A stretch of 62,706 bases of DNA, counting the filler, from Choristocarpus tenellus KU-1152 (lineage: Eukaryota > Protista > Phaeophyceae): assembly GCA_964200185.2 (NCBI GenBank). It is 11 parts of 11 records of this genome, joined end to end, with 100 filler letters (N's around TTAATTAATTAA, not from the genome) between each part and the next. Parts side by side here need not be neighbours in the genome. Positions count along the whole stretch, not along the records: positions 10,836 to 26,019 come from CAXNAD020001038.1; 10 more parts are not named here. One strand, 5' to 3'. Both the position numbers and the translations under genes were made by a program. Below, one piece after another: positions 10,285-26,019 of the stretch. Numbering within the stretch: position 1 is the first letter of the stretch; every line of letters starts with the position of its first letter. The notes beneath the pieces were generated by a model. It was given only the letters and a program-made list of their open reading frames with translations, made no database searches and was not told the origin of the DNA.

Positions 10285-11049
10285 CTGATACAAGGGCAAA
10301 GGAGAGACAGGGTTAGGGATAGGAGACAAGTGAAAGGATCGTCTTGGTACCCTACTTCCAATGCAGAGACTTCTTCCCCACTCCAAAAACATCTTCATTC
10401 TGGTTCGAATCAGGCCACTTCCCACTTCCCACTTCCCACATGACAAGAATATCCGTACCAGTTGACACGACTGCCTCCAACAAGCCTCTCATAAGAGAGT
10501 CCAAACTTAATGGAAGTTAACTATTTAACTATTTGACACCGAGTTGAATCTAGAGGTTAATTATGACAACCTGGATGTACACAAGGAAAAGCATCAATGT
10601 GAGCTTGATTATCTTACAAGAACCACCACCAGCATGAAGGGGGGGGGGGGGGGGGGGGGGGAGGGGGGAGGGGGACAGGACGGACCGCACCCCCCCCCCC
10701 CCACAACCCCGCGCGCCTCCCCTTCTCGTAAAAAANNNNNNNNNNNNNNNNNNNNNNNNNNNNNNNNNNNNNNNNNNNNTTAATTAATTAANNNNNNNNN
10801 NNNNNNNNNNNNNNNNNNNNNNNNNNNNNNNNNNNAAATAGGAAGCACAAATAAATAATAAACAAGCAATGAGAAGACACCACACAAAGGTCACTCTTCC
10901 AATTTCAACCATGTAATCACGTTCAGCAAAGGGGGTCGTGTGAGGCTTCACACCTTCTTATCTTCACTACTAACAAATAGCATTACCTCCCAAGGTCATT
11001 TGCACAGACCGCACTTGCTCTGCGTTATGCATTGGCTCTTCCTCCAGGT

Positions 11050-12355
11050 CACGAGAGGCTCCTGAGGGGTGTGGGTTCTAAATTGGTGAAAGAGTTCGGC
11101 ATGGGAGAGAGATACCCTAGACGAGTGTGGGTGCACGTCAAAGAACAGGTAGACAGGGGGAATAATGTCTTCCTGAAATTACAAGCATGATGTGGACAGC
11201 CATCGGACTTTATGACAACAAAACAAGCAAAGATCTAGGAAATCAACCTCAGTGTTCACACACTCACTATTGACCAACTTTCCACCAAACTCACTGAAGT
11301 GGGCCTTACATTCAGCAGCTCAAAGTATCATCACTGGCTTGAAGCTATGGGAGCAACAAGGGTTCAGCGCCGCGTTACCCCTAGCCTTTCGTTTTCTCAC
11401 AAGAACAGGGTGGACTTCATCCTCAACCAGATCTCCTGCAACGACAAAATCTACAAATCTGACCTCAACACCAATTCACGTCGATGAGGCATGGTTCCAC
11501 CCTATCCGCAACAAGAGATGATGCACATGTTCCCGGGGGAGGAAAGGTGGGCTCGGTGAAGGTGCAGCACAAGAGTCACATTCCCAAATTGATGTTCATC
11601 TCCGTTGTTTCGCGCCCAGATCCTTCCCATGATTTCGATGGCAAGATTGGGATCTGGAGGGTTTTGCATCCCGAAGGAGGTGTAACGGAATGCAGCATGG
11701 CACAAAAAGGGCGAGGAGTGCAAGGTCAACGTCACTGTCAACGCCAAGTGATACCTGGAGCGGTACACAGACCAGCTGTTGCCAGTGATCAAGGGAAAAG
11801 TGCCGTCGCTGGAACCGGGGGGGGAGCCTCCATACAGCAGGATGGCGCAACACCACATATGGGCAAGGGCACATACAGATGCTCATGACACAGCCAGCAC
11901 AATCGCTGGACCTCCACATCAATTATTTGGGATTTTTTTCCATGTCTGAAAAGCAGGGTTTGGGGCAGAGTGTTACAGCACCATCGATGAACTTGTAGAG
12001 GGGGTTTCAAGTATGTTCCACGTGTACGACACAGACACGCTCGAGAGGGTATGGCAGAGTCTGTTTGAGAGGTACAACCAGGCGTTAATGGCGTTGGGGG
12101 GTATCGATTTCGAGGTAGAGCACACCAGGACCAAAAAAAGGTAGCAGGAGGGCGGTTTGGCTAGATCGGCCGAAGTAGACCGAGAGGCCTCCGTGGCCGC
12201 CCTGGATTGGTGGGTTTACCGTGTCGAATATAGGCGAGATAGATACTTTTCACCGTAATATATCCCAAGGAATCCAATGCAAAGGTCTGTTTTGTAATCG
12301 GAGGTCATCCCGAAGATCTACAACTTAACGGCCCAGACTTATGGGACAGAGGGAG
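11050..12355 (+). mobile_element. Degenerate Tc1/mariner DD39D-type (plant/oomycete-like) transposon with right TIR
   Basis: Frameshifted motifs HVDEAWF, HKSHIPKLMFISVVSRPD, FDGKIGIW, IQQDGATPH, QPAQSLDLHINYLGFF. 12338-12355 reverse-complements to CTCCCTCTGTCCCATAAG (Stowaway/Osmar-type TIR). Left end not found; start coordinate approximate. Confidence 0.85.
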
Positions 12356-14240
12356 AATACAGTACGCATTTACATGATAGTTTCTTCTTAATTTTTTATT
12401 CTTATTGCAGTCAGTACATTAGTTCCAGGCACAGTTCCAGATCACATCCTCTTCTGGAGTTGATGCTTGTATTTAGTATCTTGCACAAACACGCGAATGG
12501 TTTGATCTCCTCAAACATGTGGTCAAAGGCGATGTAAGGCAGAGAAAAGCACTGATATTTGGAAGAAGTTATGTATATGTGTAGCAGAAAATGAAAATGC
12601 AAAAGGAAACAGGGGGGCCTGGACACAGCAAAGGAGGTTAAATCCGATTCCCAGGAAGGTACAAAACACACGCAAGGCCCAACCAATGGAGCCCCCACTA
12701 AATTAAAAACAAGTCAGGGGAGCACAACAACCGCACAGGGGAAAGCAAGAAAGTAGGAAAGAATCATTGACAGAGGAACGCCCCTATGCTGCAGCACACT
12801 GCAGCACAAATAGTAAGCCTGTGTGGCCGTGACAACTTTCATGGCATATTGAAATATCAATCTATGAAGTTCTTGGCTTCTACTGTCAGGCTTTCATCCA
12901 TGTGTTGTATCACTAATCAAATTCCTTTGCAGACCCCAGTACACTAGCGGTGAACTTGGATATCAAAAACAAATCTGAACAACAACAACAAAAGAAACAA
13001 GCCTTGAACAGGAACATTCCTACCCATAGCACACAACAGCGCCAACACCAAGGAGGTATGGCTGTAGCAAGGTTCTTTGTGTAACGCCAATTATCCTTCC
13101 ATAAAGTTCTTGATTCCGGCACTGCCACGTATGTGTTGCATCACGTACATGTGTTCCTCTGCAACTTCAGTGTAGACAAGTGCTAATGGTTAAGGCGAAT
13201 GCCATCTTGCTCGCAATAACCCTGTTCTCACTTGTCACTCCGCCCACCGAGAACTCATAGGCAGCCAAACTGTCGCCACTGATATTCATTAGTGAAGTCC
13301 TCTTTGGTTGCCTGAGCACCACCCTCTACCTAAGGAAATCAATACCTCCCTCCGTCCTCCTGACTAAATTGACGTGGTTGTGGGCAATTCAGTGAGAAGT
13401 TAATATAAGCCCGACATATTTTCCGGTTGACGTACGGTGGGTTATCATGTTGCAAACGAGCAAACAGTTTTATTAGAGACTTGATTGCTTGGAATATCCC
13501 TGTCATTGGCTGTCGTGGTTCCCCTTGACCACTGATCACTCCGTCCTGCAGCCTTTTGGGGAGGTGGGCCGTTAACTAATCCAGGAAATTCCCAATTTCT
13601 GCCAGCGAAGAAACCAAAATGCGTCACGGCAGTAAGGTAAGTACTGCTGAAAGTGTGCTTGAAACAATTATCTTAGTACCACATTCTGTCTACGACTTCT
13701 GGTGTTTTCGTGCATCACATCGTTATCATGGATACTGTCTTATTGTTATAAAATATTTTTGGTATTCAGTTTTGCTATTATTATTGTTTTAGGCACCACC
13801 AATTAGACCACAACAACCCTGTTTTTAAACAAATCCACCAGTGACAGATAGGGTCTTAATAGAGCTCTATAATGCACTTACTATATAGTAGTGGAGGCAA
13901 GCAAACACTGGCGCCATATCTCATCTATTCACCCCCTATCCCTCTCTGTTCATCGTCAGAGCGATACTCAGCATTATTAACGCAAGTGCTGATCGAATGA
14001 GGTTTGCTGTTATTGTATTGTTGCTCCGCAGCCCCAGGCTTTTCTGAATGACTGTCAGGCAACCAGCCACTGACGCCTGCTTTGCGTCATCCCTTGAGGG
14101 CACTTGTATTGTATTTCTTCATAGATGAAAACATATTTTCTGTGTGTGGTGAAATAGTATCTCCATGTTCCCAAGGCTTCATCAAACTTCTCTAGTGGGA
14201 GGTCATTTGGCCAGTCATCCAGAGCTCGCGCTTTAGCACA

Positions 14241-14285
14241 GCAGCAGCAGGAGCAGCAGCAGGAGCAGCAGCAGGAGCAGCAGCT
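14241..14285. repeat. (GCAGCAGCAGGA)n 12-bp/CAG-type repeat
   Basis: Direct reading; it explains the spurious poly-Cys ORF 14055-14348. Confidence 0.8.
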
Positions 14286-15476
14286 GATGAATGCAGAACA
14301 CCCTAGGATACACTCCACGATAGGTGCAAGCAGAGGGGATCTTTCCATCTAATTCACCCTATCACCAAAGTATCGATTATTTGATTTACCATATCAATTT
14401 ACATATCAATTTGGAACAGCTTGGCACCATGTAGAGCTGAAGGGCTTACAAACCTCGCTGAATAAAGACCTCCATCCAGTGATGGAATACCTCCGTGTCG
14501 GATGATTGGTTGTGAGGGAGGTAATTAGTAATTGGTTTCGTTCTCCTTCCAGGGTCTGTCCTGCATACACTGCTTGCCAAGTAGTAGGAAAAGTGCTATT
14601 AAAGAAATTGCTCCAACACATATTCAAGAGACCGATACACACGCCCTGTTGGTTGTAGATAGTAGACCGAATTGCATTCATTACGGACATCTTGGGCTTG
14701 GCTTTGGGCCTGGTCTTTACAGATACATCCTGGAAATGTGAACGAAGCAATCGCCCCCTTGAGGTCTCCAGGTGCAATCGACCTTCATAGCAATTTTACA
14801 TGAATGGGTGGTGCATTGGTGTGACGACCATTGTTCCAGACCTGCGAGCAGCAACTAGCATACACTCATATCCATGGTTCTCATGGGGACGACGACTGGT
14901 AGTGTGTCTTCAACTTCTACTGTGGCAAAGACACTGTCTGGTGTCCAAACATGCCATCCTCAGTGGTAACACAGAAACAAAATAGTACGCAGAGTTGACA
15001 GGTAAGGTTTCCTTCATTTGTCGTAGTGGTATGATGTGTGATAATGTTGTACGCCCTGAAGCTATTAGATCTCAGGTCTCCATGGTGTATATGTCATTAT
15101 TGGGTGTATGTTGCCTACCATTACATGATAACTCAACAATATACAGATGTTATGCAATTTTGCTGTAACATATAGAGTACATAATTCACAGTATATTATG
15201 TCCTGTACCATTCAGATTGATGACACATACGTACGTCCTAGTATGATATTTTGTACGGCAACACTCAAGACGAAAACATACCTGACATGTGCAAAGTCCA
15301 TAAATCATCAGTTGAAGGCACACATGATACATACTTCGAGCATCCATTAATATATCCCCGAACACACCAATCAAAACAAAGATGACCACTTGTTGTGTCA
15401 ATAATATTGACCAAGACGCTAGCACAAGGATACAAATGAAAACATTATGGAACAAAATAATATTGCTTTGTCCGAG

Positions 15477-15677
15477 GAGTGAAAGTATCTTAGAGGGTAC
15501 GAGTTTTGCCCTGTTTGTCCATTTGGGGCTTGGCATCCNNNNNNNNNGAGAAGGTGTGTCCGGAACAAGGATATTGACACTTCCTATAAAATAAGATAGA
15601 CAAAATTACATCAAATCGCAACATTGGATTTTGGTCCCCAAATGGACGCGGCCCTACCCTCTAAGATACTTTGGCTC
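15477..15677 (+). mobile_element. MITE family A copy A1 (internal N gap), 4-bp TSD CGAG
   Basis: Left TIR GAGTGAAAGTATCTTAGAGGGTA, right TACCCTCTAAGATACTTTGGCTC; cgag on both flanks. Confidence 0.88.
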
Positions 15678-17376
15678 CGAGATGTACAGCTTCATAGCTA
15701 GCTATCACAAGGTTGACTGGCTTGTCCTGTGGAATAACCATCCCACACACATACTTGTAGCATAACATGGTTTGATAGAGTTCCAGTAGATCCCTGGGGT
15801 GCAGTTGGCCGTATGTAGATTTTCCATATCGCAAAAATGGTACTCCAGTACTTCATAATAAGTACCCTACCACCGTTAACCTTTGATCATTCCTGACCCC
15901 TGTCATCCATTCAAAGGTTTCTTACTCGCTTTCTCACTATGTCCCTTGGATGCCAAAAATCACGCTTGCGGCAAGGTGGGGTGGATCCTGTATACAACAA
16001 ATTTTACAAAACACTCAAAATAAGGACATGATTTCCTCTCAAGTTTCTAGAGGCAGATTCTCGTTAGGACAGCAACTCTCAATTGTAAGCACCTGGTGAT
16101 TTTAAAGGAGACAAAATTCCCCAGCCAATCCATCTACTGCCCATGTGAGCTCTTATTGGAGTCAGCTGAGCATGTAATGCTACACCCGCACCTTGCTCTC
16201 TGAAGATCGGAGGGTGACTAGTCATCTATGAGGACTTAAATAACTTGAAATATAGGCATGGTAACCACTACCCTCTCCTCACAGGACCAGTAGGAGCAGT
16301 CAATGCAACACAGCATCTGACCCTCCTGTTCACCACAGACTATGACAACATGTCAGGGTCATTATGGAGAACTTGTACCAAATTTGTAGGTCTTGGGCGG
16401 GAAGCGATCTGTTGTTCAGTGCCTTGCCATGCAACATATGATAAATCAGCAGCACGGGTTTGTAGTTACGACACTAATGCACCTACTTTATTTTTCCTCT
16501 TGACAGTAGGAGAGATTTAATTTGCACTTTCAACACCTATCTCAACCTTATCCATCCTGTAGCAACACCCTTCTTTACCATGCTCAAGACTAGCTCGTTT
16601 TACTGGTGAAAGGAAAGGACTCCCAATAGTGGGACTTCCTTATACATCCTGCAGGGATGATGCCCTCACAAAATATATCTTGATAATTTTATCAAGCTAA
16701 GAAACCAATTCAACATCAGAGCAGTAGACACTTGAAGATATTCCAAACACCAAAAAGTACTCCAGAATCCTGTCGCACTCAAAAATGGGTCAACTGGACG
16801 GTCCTACTGGAAGAGGTCTCATATGTGATTGAGCTCACTGAGTTTGCGATCGACAAAGCAAGCATTTCCTGGCACAGGTAGATGCAGCACAGGTTCATCT
16901 CCTGAAGGTGAGCACCATAAGGTTTGTCCCTGACTTGGATGAACCAAGACCAAAGAGTAGGACATACTTTGAACAAAGCACCTAACTGCATTTGTATGCA
17001 TTTGTCACAGAGAACTAAAGGAAGGAACGTTGAAAGACAAGAGTGCATGAATGACTCTCAAGCAACAGCCAAGAAGCTTTGCAGAAACGATGTGGTTGTA
17101 GACCTTCGATTGTGGATTGATACAGTGTCAGGTATTATGGCGTGATGATATATTGTAAGGAGTGTTGATGCACTAAACGTGCCTCTGTTTCTAAACACAT
17201 GCGTGCTGGATAATCACACACACACACACACACACACGTGAGACATCATGTAAGTAACGGAAAAGCGTAAGTAGTCTACAAGTATATACATCATCCAATA
17301 TTATCAAGCAAAAAATCACACACACAAACACACACACACACATACACACACAAAGGCCCTCTCCTCTGGTTATCAC

Positions 17377-20311
17377 TCATGTAGCACAAGAGCTGTTAAC
17401 TCCCACGCCCACAGCTGATCCCTGCCTTGTAGATTCCTCGTTCCGCTTGTCCCAAATGTCAATCTTAGGCCAAGTGTTTCGCAAAAATACAAGAAGATCA
17501 ATGTTGGGTAAGTTACTCAAATGGAGCTCCTCAGGGCCTCTAGGAATTGCCCTGGGGCAGCCCCCGTTGCTAAGAAACATGCGCTCCGAGTGTACCTGGG
17601 TTGCCGGAGTGGCCAAGACACGGCGTGCTACCATAGCTAGAAGGGGAAAGTGACTGGCCCTGTGCTGCCACCACTTGAGCGGGTCAAGCATCACCCTAAC
17701 CCCGCTGCCAACTGTCTCATCGTACATAGAAATACCCATGGCTTCCTTAAAAGACGCCACTTCCAGATGCGCAGCTTGTCGAAAGCGCTGCTTGGCCATG
17801 GCACCATCGGTACCACCCACTGTGACCCTGCTTGGTTGAGGGCTGGCAATTATCCCCTGACTGAACGCCAAGAAGCCACGCAGCCTCTTTGGATTTCGCT
17901 CGACACACCCCTCCTCGTCCGCACCCATAGCCCCCACCTTTGCTTCTGCACTGCCCCCCCCCACCAAGGCAACAGCACCAGCACCCGAAGAAATTGTCCC
18001 CATACTATTTGGTGAGGCAGCTACGAAGGTAGGGCCCCCCAACGCCGATGGCAGGACTGGATCATTTAGAGCAAGCTCTGATGATGCAGCCAACAAGGTT
18101 GAAGAAAGGTTTGTTGCTGGAGTCACTGCGTCAGTTGTTGCCACTGGGGGCACTGTTAAGATCTCCTTGTTGCGCTCCGCTTCCATGACATCAGCAGCCT
18201 CCATTACCACAAGCTCCCAGATACCCATGTGCTCGCTTTCCGGCACACCATACAGAATCTTGGTCCTGGGATCCAAGGCCGTTGCAAGAAGTTGTCTCCT
18301 CCTGAATCCCCCCAGCTGTCCCTCAGGACCATCGCTCAAACTTGTAGCGACACCCGTCCCATCCCCCCACCAGCACTGGAAGTCTCTCAGCATCAGTGCA
18401 ACACTGTGATCAACTGCATTCCTAGCTCCTATCTCTTCTGTAGTAGCGGCAGCAGTAGCACCAGCAGCAGTTCCAGGGGTAGCATTTACGGAACTTGTGG
18501 CAGGGTCAGAAATGCTACTGTTGGTACCAGAGGGTAGTGAAGAGGCCATGGTGGTGGTAACAGTTGTGCTGTCACTGCTGGGGCTTGTGCTGCTCTCATA
18601 CTCCTTGGCCGCATTCCTCAGGTCAACAAGGAGGTCGTGCACAAGGGGAAGAACAAGGCTGCTGGTCACAGTGGTACTGTCCTCCAAAACGCCTTTAGTC
18701 TCTACAAATGGCTCAAGTATAACTACAATCTTGGATAGGATGAGCCAATCTTCTTCGGTTAGCATGGGTGAGAGGCCATCCACATGTTCATGCAAGCGAA
18801 TAGCATCCTTTAGGCGCACAAGATTATTCACCATTGCAAGCACAGACCACCAACACCACCTCTTCTCGCCTTCTTCGTTGCAAATCAATCCCCAGATGTC
18901 GCTACTAACTGGTTCCCCCCTGAAATTCTCAACCCCCGGCCACCTCAGAACCTTGGGCGAGCCAATGCCTTTCAGGGCGCAGCATTCCTCGAGGCGCTTC
19001 AGGGCTTGACTAAACGGCATGTAGCGTTCGGTGAGTTTCCGTGCCGATGCCACAGCCTCTCTTGTCCTCCCGCCATTGGTCCTTCCCTGTAGCCCAATAG
19101 ATCCACCAAGGGCCACCGCTACGGTGTGCTCTAGCCGGCGGCTGGCACAGGTGACATGTTCCCCAACCACACCCCTTTCCATCAGGACGCGACCAGCCTT
19201 GGTGATCGCCTGCTCACCAGAGCCCGTCCCAAAGGCCTGTACACGATCTATCAGAGAGCGCCCCCTGATCTTCTCCTCGACAACGTCAAAAAACTCTCTG
19301 CTTCCCGAGTTCACCTTTACACAATCCAGCCCAAGCTCCACCAGGTTCCAGGCCTCGTCGATCCAGCTTAGATTGAGGAATGCGTGAGTTGTAGAGAGGC
19401 CAGTGTTTTCTCTCCATGCCCCCACGGAGATGCTGACGTGCTGGTCTTTGACCGCAAGCGCCACCTTTTCCAGAAGCTCCTGTTTGTATCCTTCTAGAAG
19501 AGCGACGAGGCCCTCGCGGTCAGGGAGGGATACATTTTCGTTGAGACACTTCACCATGCTTCGGAAATGTTCGCATTCAACAGTCTGTCGATAGACCAGG
19601 CCAAGGAAGAAGAGGGGAGGAAGCACGAAGGGGCTTGAATAGGCGTGTGGGAGAGTACCACACAAGGCCGGCATTGAAATTGGTCCATGTTCGAATGTTG
19701 GAGGGTTCCCGTCGACCGGAAACTATACGGGCAAGAGGGTGAATGAAGGTAAATTAAGGTAAGGTTTGGGAAAGGGATGGCATTGAGAGTTTCCTCACCG
19801 AGAGTTCTTGTTGCACCAAGAAGCGGCAAAGTGGGCGATGCCAGCAAGGAACCCCTGGCTCGTAGAAGTGTGACATCGACGTTTGAGAACCTTTTAAATC
19901 CAGGCACTCTTGATAAGCAGCCTTGTGACCCGGTCTCCTTGCGCAGTTGAGGTGGCTGAGGAGGTTTGAGGACGACCTGGACTTACCATAACTTATCTCA
20001 GCATGACTCAAATCTCCACTCTCGACACACAGGTTACATATTGCTTTGTGAGGCTCCCTTCCACCGGCATATATCTTGAAATACTTCCATACATGAGCCC
20101 TCGCCCCATTAGGTCTCATCTTAGGCCAATCCCTGGCTCGCCGCTCCTTCTCCTCCCTAAGCTCCTCTTTGGAGTCGAACACATCTCCACCTGGAGCTCC
20201 TCCCGCAACATCCTTTCCCTTACCAGATGACCTCTTGCTGGAGGAACCAGGGGCAGCTATAGTCGGAAGTACACTAGACGATGTACTTAACGAATCTCCG
20301 TGCAAACCCAT
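17377..20311 (-). CDS. BED zinc finger + hAT transposase-derived protein (~906 aa), predicted catalytically inactive, candidate domesticated gene; exons 20311-19799 and 19584-17377
   Basis: zf-BED (AHVWKYF...AICNLC...SSSNLLSHL...H). A 214-bp GT-AG intron joins QQELS/TVECEHFRSM...LPDR, restoring the hAT 'xVExxxFRxM...LPxR' segment. W-WW motif (RWCWWSVLAMVNNLVRL), ATALDPR and the hATC dimerisation motif DPLKWWQHRASHFPLLAMVARRVLATPATQVHSERMF are present. No stops or frameshifts. Confidence 0.9.
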
Positions 20312-20536
20312 ACCACACACCCCTTCTACTGATGGTGTTCTCAGTTATCGAAAGAGGTGAACCGCTGAACCGATTGCCTTATATTGTTATACCATACAAA
20401 GTCACTCGAATCGAAGTGAATTTTATCGAAGCCTGTAATAGAACAGCAAGTATTATTTTTCTATGTCATATACGATAATTGTTGTCAAAAACAGGTCTCA
20501 TTTTGGGATCTCCAACGGATATATTGATATGAGAGA

Positions 20537-20566
20537 TCGCGCGCGGAGAAAATATATTTCGCGCGC
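20537..20566. promoter_or_regulatory. CpG-rich inverted element with an E2F-like site (TTTCGCGC at 20557-20564) upstream of the hAT-derived gene
   Basis: GCGCGCGGAGAAAATATATTTCGCGCGC, about 230 bp 5' of the ATG; matches TTTSSCGC. Function inferred only. Confidence 0.3.
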
Positions 20567-20685
20567 TACTTTTTACTGTTGAAGTCAAACAACTTGCGTT
20601 TATTTTCCTCACGAATTCTGGACTATTTTTTTTATTCTCTCTTTACAATCCACCCATCCCTCTTCCCTCCCCATTGTACCCACTT

Positions 20686-21060
20686 CTGACCACCCAGTGC
20701 GACCTCTTCGCCACTGATTTCCCGTCCTCCCCCCCCTTTGTGGTGGCCAACCAATGTGAACCCCTTTCACCACTGTTTTCCAGCCACCGCCCACCTCTGA
20801 TGACCAACCAGTGCAAACCCCCTTCGTCACTGATTTTCCGGTCACCCCTCACATCTATCTGATGACCAACCATGGCGAACCTCCTTTGCCACTGATTTCC
20901 AGTCACCCTCTCCACCCTTCAACCCCACTCAACCCCACACAAGTTACCACTCCACTCAACCCCACACCAGCTACCACTCCACTCAACCCCCCCACCAGTT
21001 ATCACTCCACTCAACCCCACCTCATTTACCACTCAACCCCATACCACTCAACACCACTCC
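20686..21060. repeat. Compound minisatellite: ~60-bp unit x4, then a ~30-bp CCACTCAACCCC-containing unit x~5
   Basis: Recurring TGACCAACCA..G.(G/A)AACCCC.TT..CCACTGATTT.C units, followed by repeated ACCACTCCACTCAACCCC. Confidence 0.8.
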
Positions 21061-22771
21061 ACACTCATCCAAGAACACCCCTTCATCATCCACTTCATAC
21101 TGTGCCTTTGAGCTAGAAGACATCTACCCCGCCCGAACTTGACCTCCCCTCCCTCTCCCCCACACCCCAATCAGTTGTGAGCAAGTGACAGGGTGGATGG
21201 GCAGGAAAGCTTGCTCGGAGGTTGTCTTCCTCTAGCCCTCCTCGTCCTGTACCCCCAGCCCTAGGTGCTCTTCTCAATATTGGCCATTCCTTCTTCCCCT
21301 GTGCCTCCGTCTACCACGCATTTCTTTAACTTCTCTTCTCTCTCTGCTAGTCACTCAGTCCTTAACTCTTTGTTCCCCTTTTGCTAATTCTTATTTTTCT
21401 CCCAGTCCTCTCCCCTCCCCTGTACCTACCTCCAACCAGAATTCTTCCGCCCACAAAACTCTGGTTAATTTGTAAACTTTCCCTTGTGGGTCACACACAC
21501 AATTGGGTCGTGTGAAACCCGACATAATAAACCAAAGTCAAGTAATCGACTGTGTTTTCTGTTCTAACTGGTTGCAGCCAATCATATTGGGGATTGATCA
21601 AGATCCTACTCTATGCCTCTTAAAATCCCCCCATCTCAACCCCACCTCTCACTCTTTTGGGGGTGGTTCTCATCACCCCTCATCACACACAACTTGACCA
21701 CATGACAATATATAGATTCTGTATAATAGTATATGTTGTATATGTATTCAACATATCCCCGTTATATATTCTATATATACATACAGAGATTTGTATACCA
21801 ACCGTTTATGAGCTGCTTGGTTCCATCAATCACAAGTAAATGTGTATTATCTCTGTCCATTTTCTCACCTTGTGCGTCAATCCACAATCAACCGTGATTC
21901 CTCTAGGACCAATGGATATTTCAGAGGACTAAAGTAACGATCGTTCCACGTGTCCTTGGAGTTGAGGAGGATGAGGTCTCTTCATGCCTCTTAGATGACT
22001 ACACACATCTTTGTGTGGGAGGTTCCTGCTTCTTTGTGGATTAATTGAGTGTCATTATTTCGAAGGGGCATTGATATGTGTCCTACACTAATCAGAAGCA
22101 GATCAAGAGCTCCGATAGTAGGAAGAATTCAACAACAAAAAATAGTCTGGAAGTAAGTTGGTGTAAGGATAATGGTTCGGAGAAGATTCACACTACGACA
22201 GTGTCCATGCGATTGTAGCTATAGAGCTATAGTAGTAGCAGTTGGGCGTAAGCCTAGATGAGTCGAACAAGTTGAGAGGTAGGCAAGGTTGCATTTTAAG
22301 GATCCCAAGAAGGATAAAAATATGCCATTTTGTATCATTGCGGAGAGAACCTTTGCTTAGTTGCGGTGTCACTTCTGTGTGGAGAGGGAGGATGTGAATT
22401 TTGCGTCCACTATTGTGTCACTATACATAAACCGATAAAATATAGTAGCTATTGCACAGAGTAAGAGAAACGGCTTAGAATGCAACACGGACCAAACCTG
22501 CCTACCTGTCAGTTGGTTTAACTCAGATGCAGAATCGTTTACAAGAATGGAGTTTTTACATGCTCTACTGAGTGAATATACCGGAGTATTTGTATTTGAT
22601 GGTTGGTGCTGGTACCTCTTTTCTTCCATTTCCCCCTTATGCGGGGAAATCTCTTCAATGATAATCCCTTCAACCCTCGAGCTTCCTCAGTCGTGGCAAC
22701 GGAAGAACATCTGAGTAGGAATGTCGGGCAGTCAAAGTCTTACAAATAAGGTTAAGTCTATATCATAGATT

Positions 22772-23012
22772 GACCCAAAGTATCTGGAGGGGGGGGGGGG
22801 GGCCCGCCCGAGCGTTACTATTTGAGGAAAAACGANNNNNNNNNNGGGGGGGGGGGGGGGGGTCTACACCAGGGTATCCATTTGGATCATAACCACGAAA
22901 AGTTTGCTTGCATCGACCATCCGACGTATGCAACCAAATAATAAAAAAATCGCGACATGAACAAATTGGTGCGAAATGGACAACCGCCACCTCCCCCCAG
23001 ATACTTTGAGCC
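22772..23012 (+). mobile_element. MITE family B copy B1 (contains N gap)
   Basis: GACCCAAAGTATCTGG ... CCCCCCAGATACTTTGAGCC; flanks att/agt (one mismatch). Confidence 0.8.
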
Positions 23013-25998
23013 AGTAATGCTGCTGTCTCAAGGGTGGTGTTGAGGGTGCAACCATTCCTAACTCAAGAAATGCGAAGCAGGGTCTCAGGTTGTTGGAAAT
23101 ATGAGGGAAAATTGGTTATATGGTCAACCTGGCATTCTTCCAGTCAACTCAAAGACTGTTAGTGTGGTCCATGTGATGTGAAGCGCTGAAAATGTCTAAC
23201 CAGATGCATGTCAGAGGTCAAATTTGGCTGATCACACATCCACTTATTACAGTATGCACAGAATCTTCCCATCCTCATCAAAGCACTCGAAGTACTTAAA
23301 CACATTCCCTGACCTAGTCCCTGTCTCCAATCGCATGCAACCTTCCTGTTGATCCTTTACACCATGTAGGGCTTGATCAGTCCCCAGGTACTCCCTTTGT
23401 GAGTTAAGTCTATACAATGTTGTAGAAGAGTTCAGGAAGTCCCTTCATCTCTTTTGCATTTCTTCTACCTCTGTAACACGCCTTCTTGGGTTATATTTAG
23501 CAATATTTTAGCATATATGTTATTGTATACTCACAAGATTATTTTGTGGACCAAAAGGCCTAAAACCGACGGTTGGCAAAATAGAACATAATTCAAGCCC
23601 CTATACGCCAATTCTGTTCTACCTTACATTTATCCATCCCACCTCTTCTGTACACCAGCCCAATTCTTCCTCAAATAAATAATTAAATTATTGAGTTCCA
23701 GGGATCTGTATTTCATATGTTGACTACGCCCAAAGCACACTCCAGCTCATACAAGGCCACAATTGAAATATATTTCTGTCGCGCTGTTGTCCTAATATCT
23801 TGGATGGTACGACCAATTGCGACCTGAGTCTTGCTGATGAAAACACTACTACTGTGTGCTATGCAGAGGGTGCTTCTACCACCACCCCTCTTCTGAGAAG
23901 TACGTGTACGCCAACTCTCCCTCTGAAAGCCGCAGTTCCCTTTTCTTGTAGTAGTGACTGTGTAGGGGGTAGAAATAGGGATGCCATGCTGCAGTGGGAT
24001 ATAGTTGGTGGCGTTTACCTGTTCCTTGACATTTTTGTTCACCAGCGGCACCAAGAACCTTCTGGGGTACAGCATATTCTTGTTATGATCCCTGCAATAA
24101 AACAACTTGGTTTGCTCCTTTTTGGCTGCATGTATGTATAGAAGTGTAAGTCCTTAGCCTTTGTATGTTCATTTTGTTTGTCCAGGAGTAGAAAATACAG
24201 ACCCGAATACCTCTGTCTGTGGGATCATCCAGGTATGTAAGCCTTCCTTCATATTCTTGACTTTCTGTTGGAGATGAACAGTAGACAAAGTGGTTTGACG
24301 TTCTGGTACCCAACCCGAGTCTTTGTTACCAACTCTCAAAAGGTCTTAAAATGAGAAAGGGAGGCGTGAATAGATTGCCAAGTAGTATACATATTGTGCG
24401 TAGGTCTGATCTGTCGCCTGCCTTGTCCCTTGCTTCTACATATCAGGTATATTCAAGCTTCCACATACATATGAAGGCCTTCCTGGTAGACAAGTCCGAC
24501 CGAAATATCCTTGCGTTCGTGTCAAGTCGACATCTAGCATTTTTGTAGTATACGACAGTATATATCTGTCTTGATACCATCATGGAAAAATATTAGACAA
24601 AATCTAAGATGGTCTTATTTTATATGTAACAGTTTATCTCCAAAATATTTCATCTGGAGAAAAAAAAAGTTTGTTGCAAACAAAAGGTCCATGTCCCTCC
24701 AAGGCAAACTGTGGTTCTGTTCGAATAGACTCCTTCAAGTGTAAGGGTCAAAATACAGGATTTATTTGTTGGTTAACCCATATTTGTTCTTGTGTGCGAA
24801 CAGATAGATAGGAATTGATTCCATTAAGGATGGTGTATTGAGGTTGTATGGTTGGCCCCTATGCTTGGGAATAATCTTTTTACAACATTTGGTGATATTC
24901 CTATATTTATCTCTTCTGTTCATACATTAGGTGGGGGATACTTTAACAGGTTCTAGACCTTGCGACATGGGATCTGTGCCATCCTTTACTATCCAATCAG
25001 TACATGGAAAGAAGTATGGTTCATGCATCACAGTATTCTCAATGAAACCTTAACCACATACTATGCTGATGGTATTTTATTTATAATAGGTACTTCTAAG
25101 CATTATATATATAATATTATGCCTGCTGATATATTTTGCAGTTGATCAAAATATCGTTGAAAGGGTTTTCGGAAATTCCCACGCTCCACATGGTGTCATT
25201 TCAGATATTTTTATTGTCTTCAGACGAGGATACGTAACAGGGAATTTGCATAAGTATCTCTACCTGTCCTTTAATGGACGCGAGCAACAAGTATGCACAC
25301 TGACAGCCGAAATTGGGAAGGTTCAAAGTCGTCTAGTGATTTAGGGAAAAAAATATTATCTAACTTTGTATATTGGAGTATTCAGTTTGCACGTATGACG
25401 GAACATAATCAAACGTGCGTGATATATTAGACTCATGACAACTGGAAAACGTTTCAGGAACAGCACGCCTCCCTTGGGTGTTTCTCGAGACAATCAAACA
25501 CCAAGCTTGAAACAACTCTTACCTTCATCATAATAACATCTTGATAAGATATTTTTTCGATGGTTATCAGGGTATCGGCATATCGCAGGCGGCTTCTTCG
25601 AGTCTCATCATCAACCTACCGCTTTGTGGGTTGGAGGTACACATTTCATCAGGGTAAGGTGGTGGGATTGTTAGCAACAGACAACGATTGCTCGAACTTT
25701 CACTTTTTCTCAAAATCAATTTTTTAAGATTGCCTTGGAATCCACTAATTGAAGTCATAGACAGGGTCCTTCTTTCATCTCCCAGTTCAGGATTCTTCAT
25801 TGCGTACTTGCCCCTGCACAGATATGGTGAGAATGGTCCAGTATGAGAGATATTTCAAATGTATGTATCACATTAGTCTGGCTAGCCTGACAAGAGGTCA
25901 AAGGTACAAGCCCTAACAAAGCTATGATGGTTCGTGCTACCTCCATGTGTTAATTTGCAAATGTCAGCTTCAATAATTCAATAATGTGACATTAGGCA

Positions 25999-26019
25999 GG
26001 GTCAAAGTATCTGGGGGGG
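25999..26019 (+). mobile_element. MITE family B terminal fragment at contig end (similar degenerate fragment at 36487-36517)
   Basis: GGGTCAAAGTATCTGGGGGGG running into the linker. Confidence 0.65.

Follow-up and report, generated by a model that had tools for sequence, protein, structure and literature searches.

A probably domesticated BED-hAT transposase gene in the brown alga Choristocarpus tenellus

Can a transposase gene outlive its transposon and be kept as a gene of the host? The question is raised by positions 17,377 to 20,311 of the window, by which we mean the whole stretch of DNA that was analysed (62,706 nucleotides (nt), filler included, joined from 11 parts of the genome assembly GCA_964200185.2 of the brown alga Choristocarpus tenellus KU-1152). 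There, an intact gene encodes a hAT transposase-like protein that retains its BED zinc finger and its C-terminal dimerisation domain and has lost most of its active site. In animals (ZBED, DREF) and in plants (SLEEPER), DNA-binding regulators have repeatedly arisen from domesticated transposases. An earlier note on this DNA had proposed that the gene is a domesticated hAT transposase in a probably stramenopile lineage, and had left copy number, relatives, dN/dS (omega), the splice junction and a possibly displaced active site to be checked. Its interpretation is supported, in that no result that it had named as contrary evidence, such as many near-identical copies between terminal inverted repeats (TIRs), an omega near 1 or catalytic residues at shifted positions, came out of the tests made. 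A low copy number without transposon ends, relatives that share the derived state and the intron, an open frame under constraint and a spliced transcript make it an unusually good case by the usual computational standards, and domestication as such we regard as very probable. We also think it likely that, taken as a whole, the gene is best explained as a host gene that descends from a BED-hAT transposase, is kept by selection and probably acts as a multimeric DNA-binding regulator. A role as a regulator of genes or chromatin in particular is favoured on balance, by analogy with known families.

Choristocarpus tenellus belongs to the Discosporangiales, the earliest-branching order of the Phaeophyceae (PMC5054896), so the host, a brown alga, is of the lineage that had been presumed. 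The gene lies on the minus strand of contig CAXNAD020001038.1 (window 10836-26019, 15,184 bp), in an assembly of 164 Mb and 27,310 contigs. The stretch is found in three public runs, all from one study; two behave as genomic DNA, and the third is called X2 here. The parts of the gene are as follows (aa, amino acids of the product; UTR, untranslated region).

19799..20311, minus strand: exon 1, aa 1-171, with the ATG at 20311; matches the N-terminus of protein P0001, and an RNA-like contig lies over 19799-20282
19585..19798, minus strand: intron, 214 nt, phase 0, GT..AG (GTGAGG...ACAG); a splice-joined contig is present in run X2
17377..19584, minus strand: exon 2, aa 172-906 and the stop, 735 codons in phase; an RNA-like contig lies over 17359-19585
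17146..17376, minus strand: 3′ UTR, minimum extent; the RNA-like contig of X2 reaches 17146, with zero depth beyond

The two exons, of 171 and 735 codons, join in phase without a stop, as expected from the reading of an ORF (open reading frame) of about 906 codons, and the stop codon is at 17377-17379. The 906-aa model is exactly NCBI protein P0001 (an unnamed product of Choristocarpus tenellus). Since the remaining five frames of the gene stretch hold ORFs of at most 170 aa, an open frame of this length is far beyond chance. Exon 1 encodes an N-terminal tail of poor conservation, a basic stretch that is conserved, the BED finger and a short linker; exon 2 encodes an RNase-H-like core with an insertion domain that is all-alpha, a pair of expanded linkers and the hAT C-terminal domain (hATC).

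Transposases of the RNase-H fold need carboxylates to hold two metal ions, and in the Hermes transposase these are D180, D248 and E572. To place these residues we used an alignment of the Choristocarpus protein with its relatives (A1, 35 sequences). A single-sequence search of the PDB gave no match, and Hermes was found only with the A1 profile (E 5e-46), by which the family blocks TTDxW, VTDxE, CxxH and SERxFS align with Hermes D180, D248, C265/H268 and E572. The equivalent positions in the gene are these.

19420..19422, minus strand: G226 (in VSISVGAW), aligned with the first catalytic Asp, Hermes D180
19222..19224, minus strand: G292 (in FGTGSGEQA), aligned with the second catalytic Asp, Hermes D248
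19138..19140, minus strand: R320 (in CASR), at the position of the CxxH His, Hermes H268; C317, equivalent to Hermes C265, is kept
17584..17586, minus strand: E838 (in SERMF), the third carboxylate, Hermes E572, retained

The losses that had been read in VSISVGAW, FGTGSGEQA and CASR are thus borne out by alignment to the Hermes profile. At the first Asp column, 25 of the 30 other hAT rows covering it have Asp, and Gly is found in Choristocarpus and in the two rows reaching it from Discosporangium, the other genus of the Discosporangiales and the sister of Choristocarpus. At the second, Asp is present in 30 of 31 other hAT rows, Gly in Choristocarpus and in one Discosporangium gene (copy A, below), and Ser in the other (copy B). 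The sequence CASR is the same in all three genes, where most relatives have CxxH. The Glu at the E838 position is kept in Discosporangium, but within AEE or AEG where others have SER. An active hAT carries the triad D, D, E (DDE) and CxxH; here only E838 is left.

These residues bear directly on one alternative, that the protein still acts as a transposase, through an unconventional active site. It would draw on E838, the conserved Trp pair, LDPR and the retained Hermes-like fold. Both Asp positions, however, hold Gly (Gly or Ser in Discosporangium), and the A1 alignment has no conserved acidic residue at a shifted position near the lost Asp sites: Discosporangium does not conserve E230, and the counterpart of E295 is the Glu of TDxExxM, which is non-catalytic. 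The gene is moreover single-copy and without ends, and we give this explanation next to no weight.

Outside the active site the transposase is preserved, and the note's reading of a retained BED finger, W motif, LDPR and hATC with SERxF agrees with the Pfam domains and motifs that we located.

19940..20095, minus strand: BED zinc finger, aa 73-124; Pfam PF02892, E 7.4e-05, above the curated cut-off
18382..18594, minus strand: linker 1, expanded, Ser/Thr/Ala-rich, aa 502-572; 71 aa against 27-28 in the nearest intact relatives
17770..18195, minus strand: linker 2, expanded, Ala/Gly/Ser-rich, aa 635-776; 142 aa against 75-83 in the nearest intact relatives
17575..17688, minus strand: core of the hAT C-terminal dimerisation domain, aa 804-841; Pfam PF05699 (Dimer_Tnp_hAT), E 2.1e-09

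Candidate zinc ligands of the BED finger are C92, C95, H120 and either C123 or H129, and the A1 family profile also matches the BED structures of ZBED1 and ZBED2. P0001 retains WWS (416-418), LDPR (608-611, as LDPRTK) and the hATC core with SERMF (837-841); through the A1 profile its hATC aligns to Hermes residues 541-606. An AF2 (AlphaFold 2) model built on A1 has a pLDDT (predicted local distance difference test score) of 75 and a pTM (predicted template modelling score) of 0.71, with most folded parts above 90 in pLDDT and values below 50 over aa 514-544 (linker 1) and 657-736 (linker 2). When this model was compared with the PDB by Foldseek, the top ten matches were all Hermes chains, at probability 1.0 and with target-normalised TM (template modelling) scores of up to 0.63. 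The model therefore suggests that a complete Hermes-like hAT architecture persists though two of the three metal-binding carboxylates are lost.

The linkers are the two long Ser/Thr/Ala/Gly-rich insertions that had been described, each of about double the length (71 and 142 aa) that it has in the closest intact relatives (about 27 and 78 aa), and in Discosporangium linker 2 reaches 155-193 aa. Linker 2 includes the motif KRLRGF (P0001 aa 741-746; window 17860-17877, minus strand), which is kept in Discosporangium and resembles K/R-rich ..GFM motifs at the equivalent place in DDE-intact relatives. It may be a candidate nuclear localisation or interaction motif of transposase heritage.

Is the gene still part of a mobile element? 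A six-frame search of its own genome returned the gene itself at 100% and otherwise only hAT fragments of 27-47% identity, most of them with stops (29 and 10 matches), and a search of the 164 Mb with the DNA of the whole gene gave one match. Repeats are detectable in this assembly, since in a like search a hairpin of about 200 bp, 1.7 kb away, gave at least 40 scored copies of 82-100% identity. The two DNA-like public runs cover gene and flank, at depths of 15 against 22.5 and of about 7 against 5 (gene against flank). The copy number is thus one, at the protein and at the DNA level. The search for TIRs around the gene ended at shuffle level, in keeping with the note, which had seen none: the score of the best inverted pair, 24, lies between the mean (22) and the maximum (31) of the shuffles. 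No TIRs were found above chance in the Choristocarpus or the Discosporangium copies. The inverted pair 16752-16768 / 20615-20631 was rejected as TIRs, its score being inside the shuffle range. Target site duplications of 8 bp are not definable without element ends. The gene is immobile, single-copy and without transposon ends.

Relatives were sought by an exhaustive HMMER search of 1.84 billion representatives, with 1109 matches, and by a word-based protein search with exon 2, which scored the 8000 candidates sharing most words and returned only the gene's own record and one Undaria protein. The three best HMMER matches are all fragments from Discosporangium mesarthrocarpum (51-53% identity), and they resolve to two paralogues, copies A and B, about 80% identical in DNA. 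Copy A is complete (L023:3973-7548): exon 1 has 168 codons, the intron 615 nt and exon 2 818 codons without a break; this copy is annotated as three protein models though exon 2 is one open frame. Copy B lies on two contigs, L022:6194-7779 (exon 1, intron and the start of exon 2) and L021:3-2309 (769 open codons), whose 164-nt overlap is only 91% identical. In the Choristocarpus gene and both Discosporangium genes exon 1 ends at the same Ser codon (TCG|GTGAG, phase 0), and in the Discosporangium sequences that cover the first Asp position (copy A and the piece on L022) the residue there is Gly. The check on relatives thus returned genes with the same catalytic losses and the same intron position. 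The most conserved part is the BED region, aa 48-141, 72% identical to Discosporangium.

Trees were made under LG+G4 and then, on 19 rows, under a mixture model. The three genes group together at 100/100, on a long stem, nested in a 100/99 clade with brown-algal hAT proteins, whose members include the DDE-intact P0002 of Undaria, P0004 and P0005, and Laminaria P0011 with Gly at the second Asp position. The simplest reading of these sequences is that the catalytic losses occurred once, before Choristocarpus and Discosporangium split. The environmental protein P0019 (L024:73-3183, 1036 aa), which is without the first Asp and has R at the His position, was considered as a wider orthologue and rejected, as it groups with Laminaria P0011 and P0013.

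Other long hAT relatives lacking at least one catalytic residue, from environmental, MMETSP and Laminaria sources, are P0019, P0021, P0047, P0031, P0011 and P0013. P0021 has His at the first Asp position and no SER, P0047 has Tyr there and an MMETSP transcript in its cluster, and P0019 has the Arg at the His position. These may be additional cases of domestication in other protists, or copies in decay.

Copies A and B are also alike over about 125 nt before the ATG (L023:3849-3972 and L022:6077-6193), with an abrupt stop further upstream; this segment is probably a 5′ UTR or core promoter, or else the breakpoint of a duplication. The same abrupt start of similarity would suit a non-autonomous element mobilised in trans, with an ORF intact by chance and the Discosporangium copies as its transposition products, and so would the unrelated outer flanks of the Discosporangium copies and flanks of the Choristocarpus gene. 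That explanation is contradicted by the lack of TIRs in either species and by the 3′ side of the Discosporangium copies, where similarity runs on past 300 nt and has no clear end. Choristocarpus has a single copy and Discosporangium no more than two, which have diverged by about 20%, and an omega of 0.18 on a catalytically dead protein would be left unexplained. We judge it very unlikely.

The measure of selection comes from the Discosporangium paralogues. Between copies A and B, 713 codons of exon 2 give a dN (nonsynonymous divergence) of 0.116, a dS (synonymous divergence) of 0.64 and an omega of 0.18 (bootstrap 95% 0.147-0.224), not a value near 1; maximum likelihood and YN00 estimates are 0.14-0.15, and exon 1 has an omega of 0.23. 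Between the two copies the intron has 76% identity, which agrees with the synonymous distance of exon 1 (dS 0.28) and makes the silent rate a fair measure of neutral change. Constraint is strongest in the insertion domain (0.07), the BED region (0.08), the former catalytic core (0.10) and the hATC (0.11; aa 766-890), and weakest in the linkers (0.24-0.26). Between Choristocarpus and Discosporangium dS is saturated (NG86 undefined or above 2.7), which makes dN/dS unusable, yet the frames are open.

The same comparison disposes of a recently dead solo copy, that is, a pseudogene without stops as yet, or an annotation or assembly artefact. The many decayed hAT fragments in the genome would make such a copy unsurprising. 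The losses and the intron, however, are common to a genus at saturated synonymous divergence, the open frames measure 906, about 985 and at least 769 codons, and the stretch is present in three public runs, with the spliced form in one. We find this account barely credible, and in practice the Discosporangium comparison refutes it.

Is the gene transcribed? In X2, depth is confined to 17146-20282 and contigs break at the exon borders (17359-19585 and 19799-20282). A 59-nt contig joins 19584 to 19799, skipping the 214 nt of the intron (CT..AC on the plus strand, GT..AG on the gene strand), at the junction that the note had predicted. Such a pattern is typical of RNA, with splicing at the predicted junction and the intron retained in a sizeable share of the transcripts. 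Contigs give no expression levels. The intron-retained form would end 14 codons into the intron and yield a BED-only product of 185 aa, possibly a short isoform. A tandem-repeat scan found a (CA)18 microsatellite in the 3′ UTR, 17317-17352, 25 nt past the stop codon; it was masked as a repeat when reads were placed. Run X3 has T for G at 19008 (Gln364Lys on the gene strand) in a single contig of depth 7.5, which may be a strain difference or an error.

Several points weigh against a domesticated host gene. No orthologue was found outside the Discosporangiales in the databases searched, so the gene is lineage-restricted. Searches of the flanks by blastn and tblastx gave only chance-level matches and no shared flanking gene, on contigs of 5-15 kb with gene-poor flanks; orthology therefore rests on the phylogeny, the common substitutions and the common intron. 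Copy B has a frameshift in the G-rich linker at the end of contig L022, which may be an assembly error or a real lesion. In X2 the intron-retaining contig is nearly as deep as the spliced one (k-mer depth 93 against 104), or about half of junction depth, and the RNA-like contig ends at 20282, 29 nt short of the ATG at 20311. The type of this run is not on record, and its RNA nature follows from the exon-limited coverage and the splice joint. Finally, purifying selection between copies is also seen in active transposons. As an account of the constraint found here this last point fails, because it needs an active enzyme, which this protein is not; for a non-catalytic protein there is no element-level reason for such conservation.

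A more serious alternative concerns what the protein is kept for. Truncated or inactive transposases inhibit P or Ac elements, and the dead transposase may have been retained, by the host or by an element, as a repressor of related hATs, binding hAT ends by its BED finger or poisoning active transposase in heteromers formed through its hATC. This too would be domestication, for genome defence rather than gene regulation. It would account for constraint on the whole multimerisation scaffold and not on BED alone (omega 0.07-0.11), and potential targets are suggested by the related hAT remnants in the same genome (the 29 and 10 matches) and by DDE-intact relatives in the same clade, one from Undaria. 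The Choristocarpus remnants, however, are 27-47% identical and mostly carry stops; they are too diverged and broken to make an evident current target family, and heteromerisation is doubtful. Long conservation across two genera also favours a stable cellular role, and we consider the repressor unlikely.

A cellular role of the kind known from other hAT-derived genes is what we prefer, and the comparison with these is informative in both directions. The SLEEPER genes (DAYSLEEPER of Arabidopsis, RICESLEEPER) are, by established knowledge, likewise host genes derived from hATs, with BED and hATC and without DDE, TIRs or target site duplications, in single or low copy and conserved between species. 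The Choristocarpus gene differs from them in its two expanded low-complexity linkers, in its restriction to Discosporangiales as far as databases show, and in its nearest relatives, which are brown-algal hAT proteins, some of them DDE-intact. ZBED proteins (ZBED1/DREF, ZBED4, ZBED6) and BEAF-32 resemble it in using BED for sequence-specific binding, with or without multimerisation through hATC, after the loss of transposase function. Several ZBEDs, however, keep only parts of the transposase, whereas the Choristocarpus gene keeps the full, constrained Hermes-like architecture; lineage and source element also differ. As the nearest relatives form the 100/99 clade that includes Undaria and Laminaria hATs, its origin is in all probability separate from the SLEEPER and ZBED families.

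With Hermes of Musca domestica the protein shares BED, an RNase-H-like core interrupted by an all-alpha insertion domain and the C-terminal hAT region; it differs in having G, G and R for D180, D248 and H268, in lacking transposon ends and in being single-copy. The DDE-intact relatives (P0002 of Undaria pinnatifida; P0004, P0005 and P0007) are 34-38% identical in the core and have LDPRTK, WWS and KRxR..GF in common with it, in the same clade, but they keep their own TTDGW, TDCE, CxxH and SERxFS and their linkers are short. They are probably its source family, not its orthologues.

The surroundings of the gene hold other repeats. The hairpin element used above as a positive control (15476-15678, about 200 bp, with 24-nt arms 92% complementary) had 4378 first-look candidates, of which at least 40 were scored; most copies are 92-100% identical, and two are full-length at 82%. 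Many have about 65 nt between two matched segments, against 9 nt in the window copy. It looks like a family of young miniature inverted-repeat transposable elements (MITEs). Two more hairpins, of about 250 bp with 30-33-nt arms, lie at 22259-22525 and 22771-23013. The arms of the latter have a core, AAAGTATCT..GAGGG, in common with the 15476-15678 element, and by this likeness it may belong to the same MITE-like superfamily. Tandem arrays at 20687-21056, 380-750 nt upstream of the ATG, consist of a 57-nt unit (x3.8) followed by a 27-nt unit (x4) and are C-rich on the plus strand; they could be promoter-proximal repeats or merely a minisatellite. A Pfam scan of six ORFs flanking the gene matched no family.

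The history to which these findings point begins with one brown-algal hAT copy that lost its ends in the ancestor of Choristocarpus and Discosporangium. The CxxH histidine of the same ancestral copy went as well, and so did two of the three carboxylates of its active site; purifying selection then preserved the dead transposase gene, which was later duplicated in Discosporangium. The protein presumably no longer cuts DNA. In Hermes, the scaffold of RNase-H-like core, insertion domain and hATC mediates assembly into dimers and octamers and makes contacts with DNA. As the BED finger and the whole hAT scaffold are kept and the cutting residues are gone, the protein is likely to be a multimeric DNA-binding factor: BED would give sequence-specific DNA binding, hATC and the insertion-domain scaffold would give dimers or higher oligomers, and the expanded disordered linkers may be interaction or spacer regions. 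The product would most likely be a nuclear factor of this kind, a transcription or chromatin regulator like ZBED, DREF and DAYSLEEPER.

Brown algae evolved complex multicellularity independently, and the Discosporangiales are sister to all other brown algae. The literature on hATs or domestication in brown algae, Ectocarpus and stramenopiles, as searched here, held nothing relevant, and the Phaeoexplorer preprint on 60 brown-algal genomes makes no mention of transposase or domestication. The case is apparently undescribed; the phenomenon itself is well known. We think it fairly likely that this is an independent BED-hAT domestication at the base of the Discosporangiales, the first described in brown algae, and that it gave a lineage-specific multimeric DNA-binding regulator, duplicated in Discosporangium, to which a BED-only isoform may add. 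Its reach is limited, as it is seen only in two small filamentous genera without genetic tools. Members of its clade whose catalytic residues are intact, one of them from Undaria, offer a ready comparison set, and the gene is a testable candidate for a lineage-specific regulator in the Discosporangiales.

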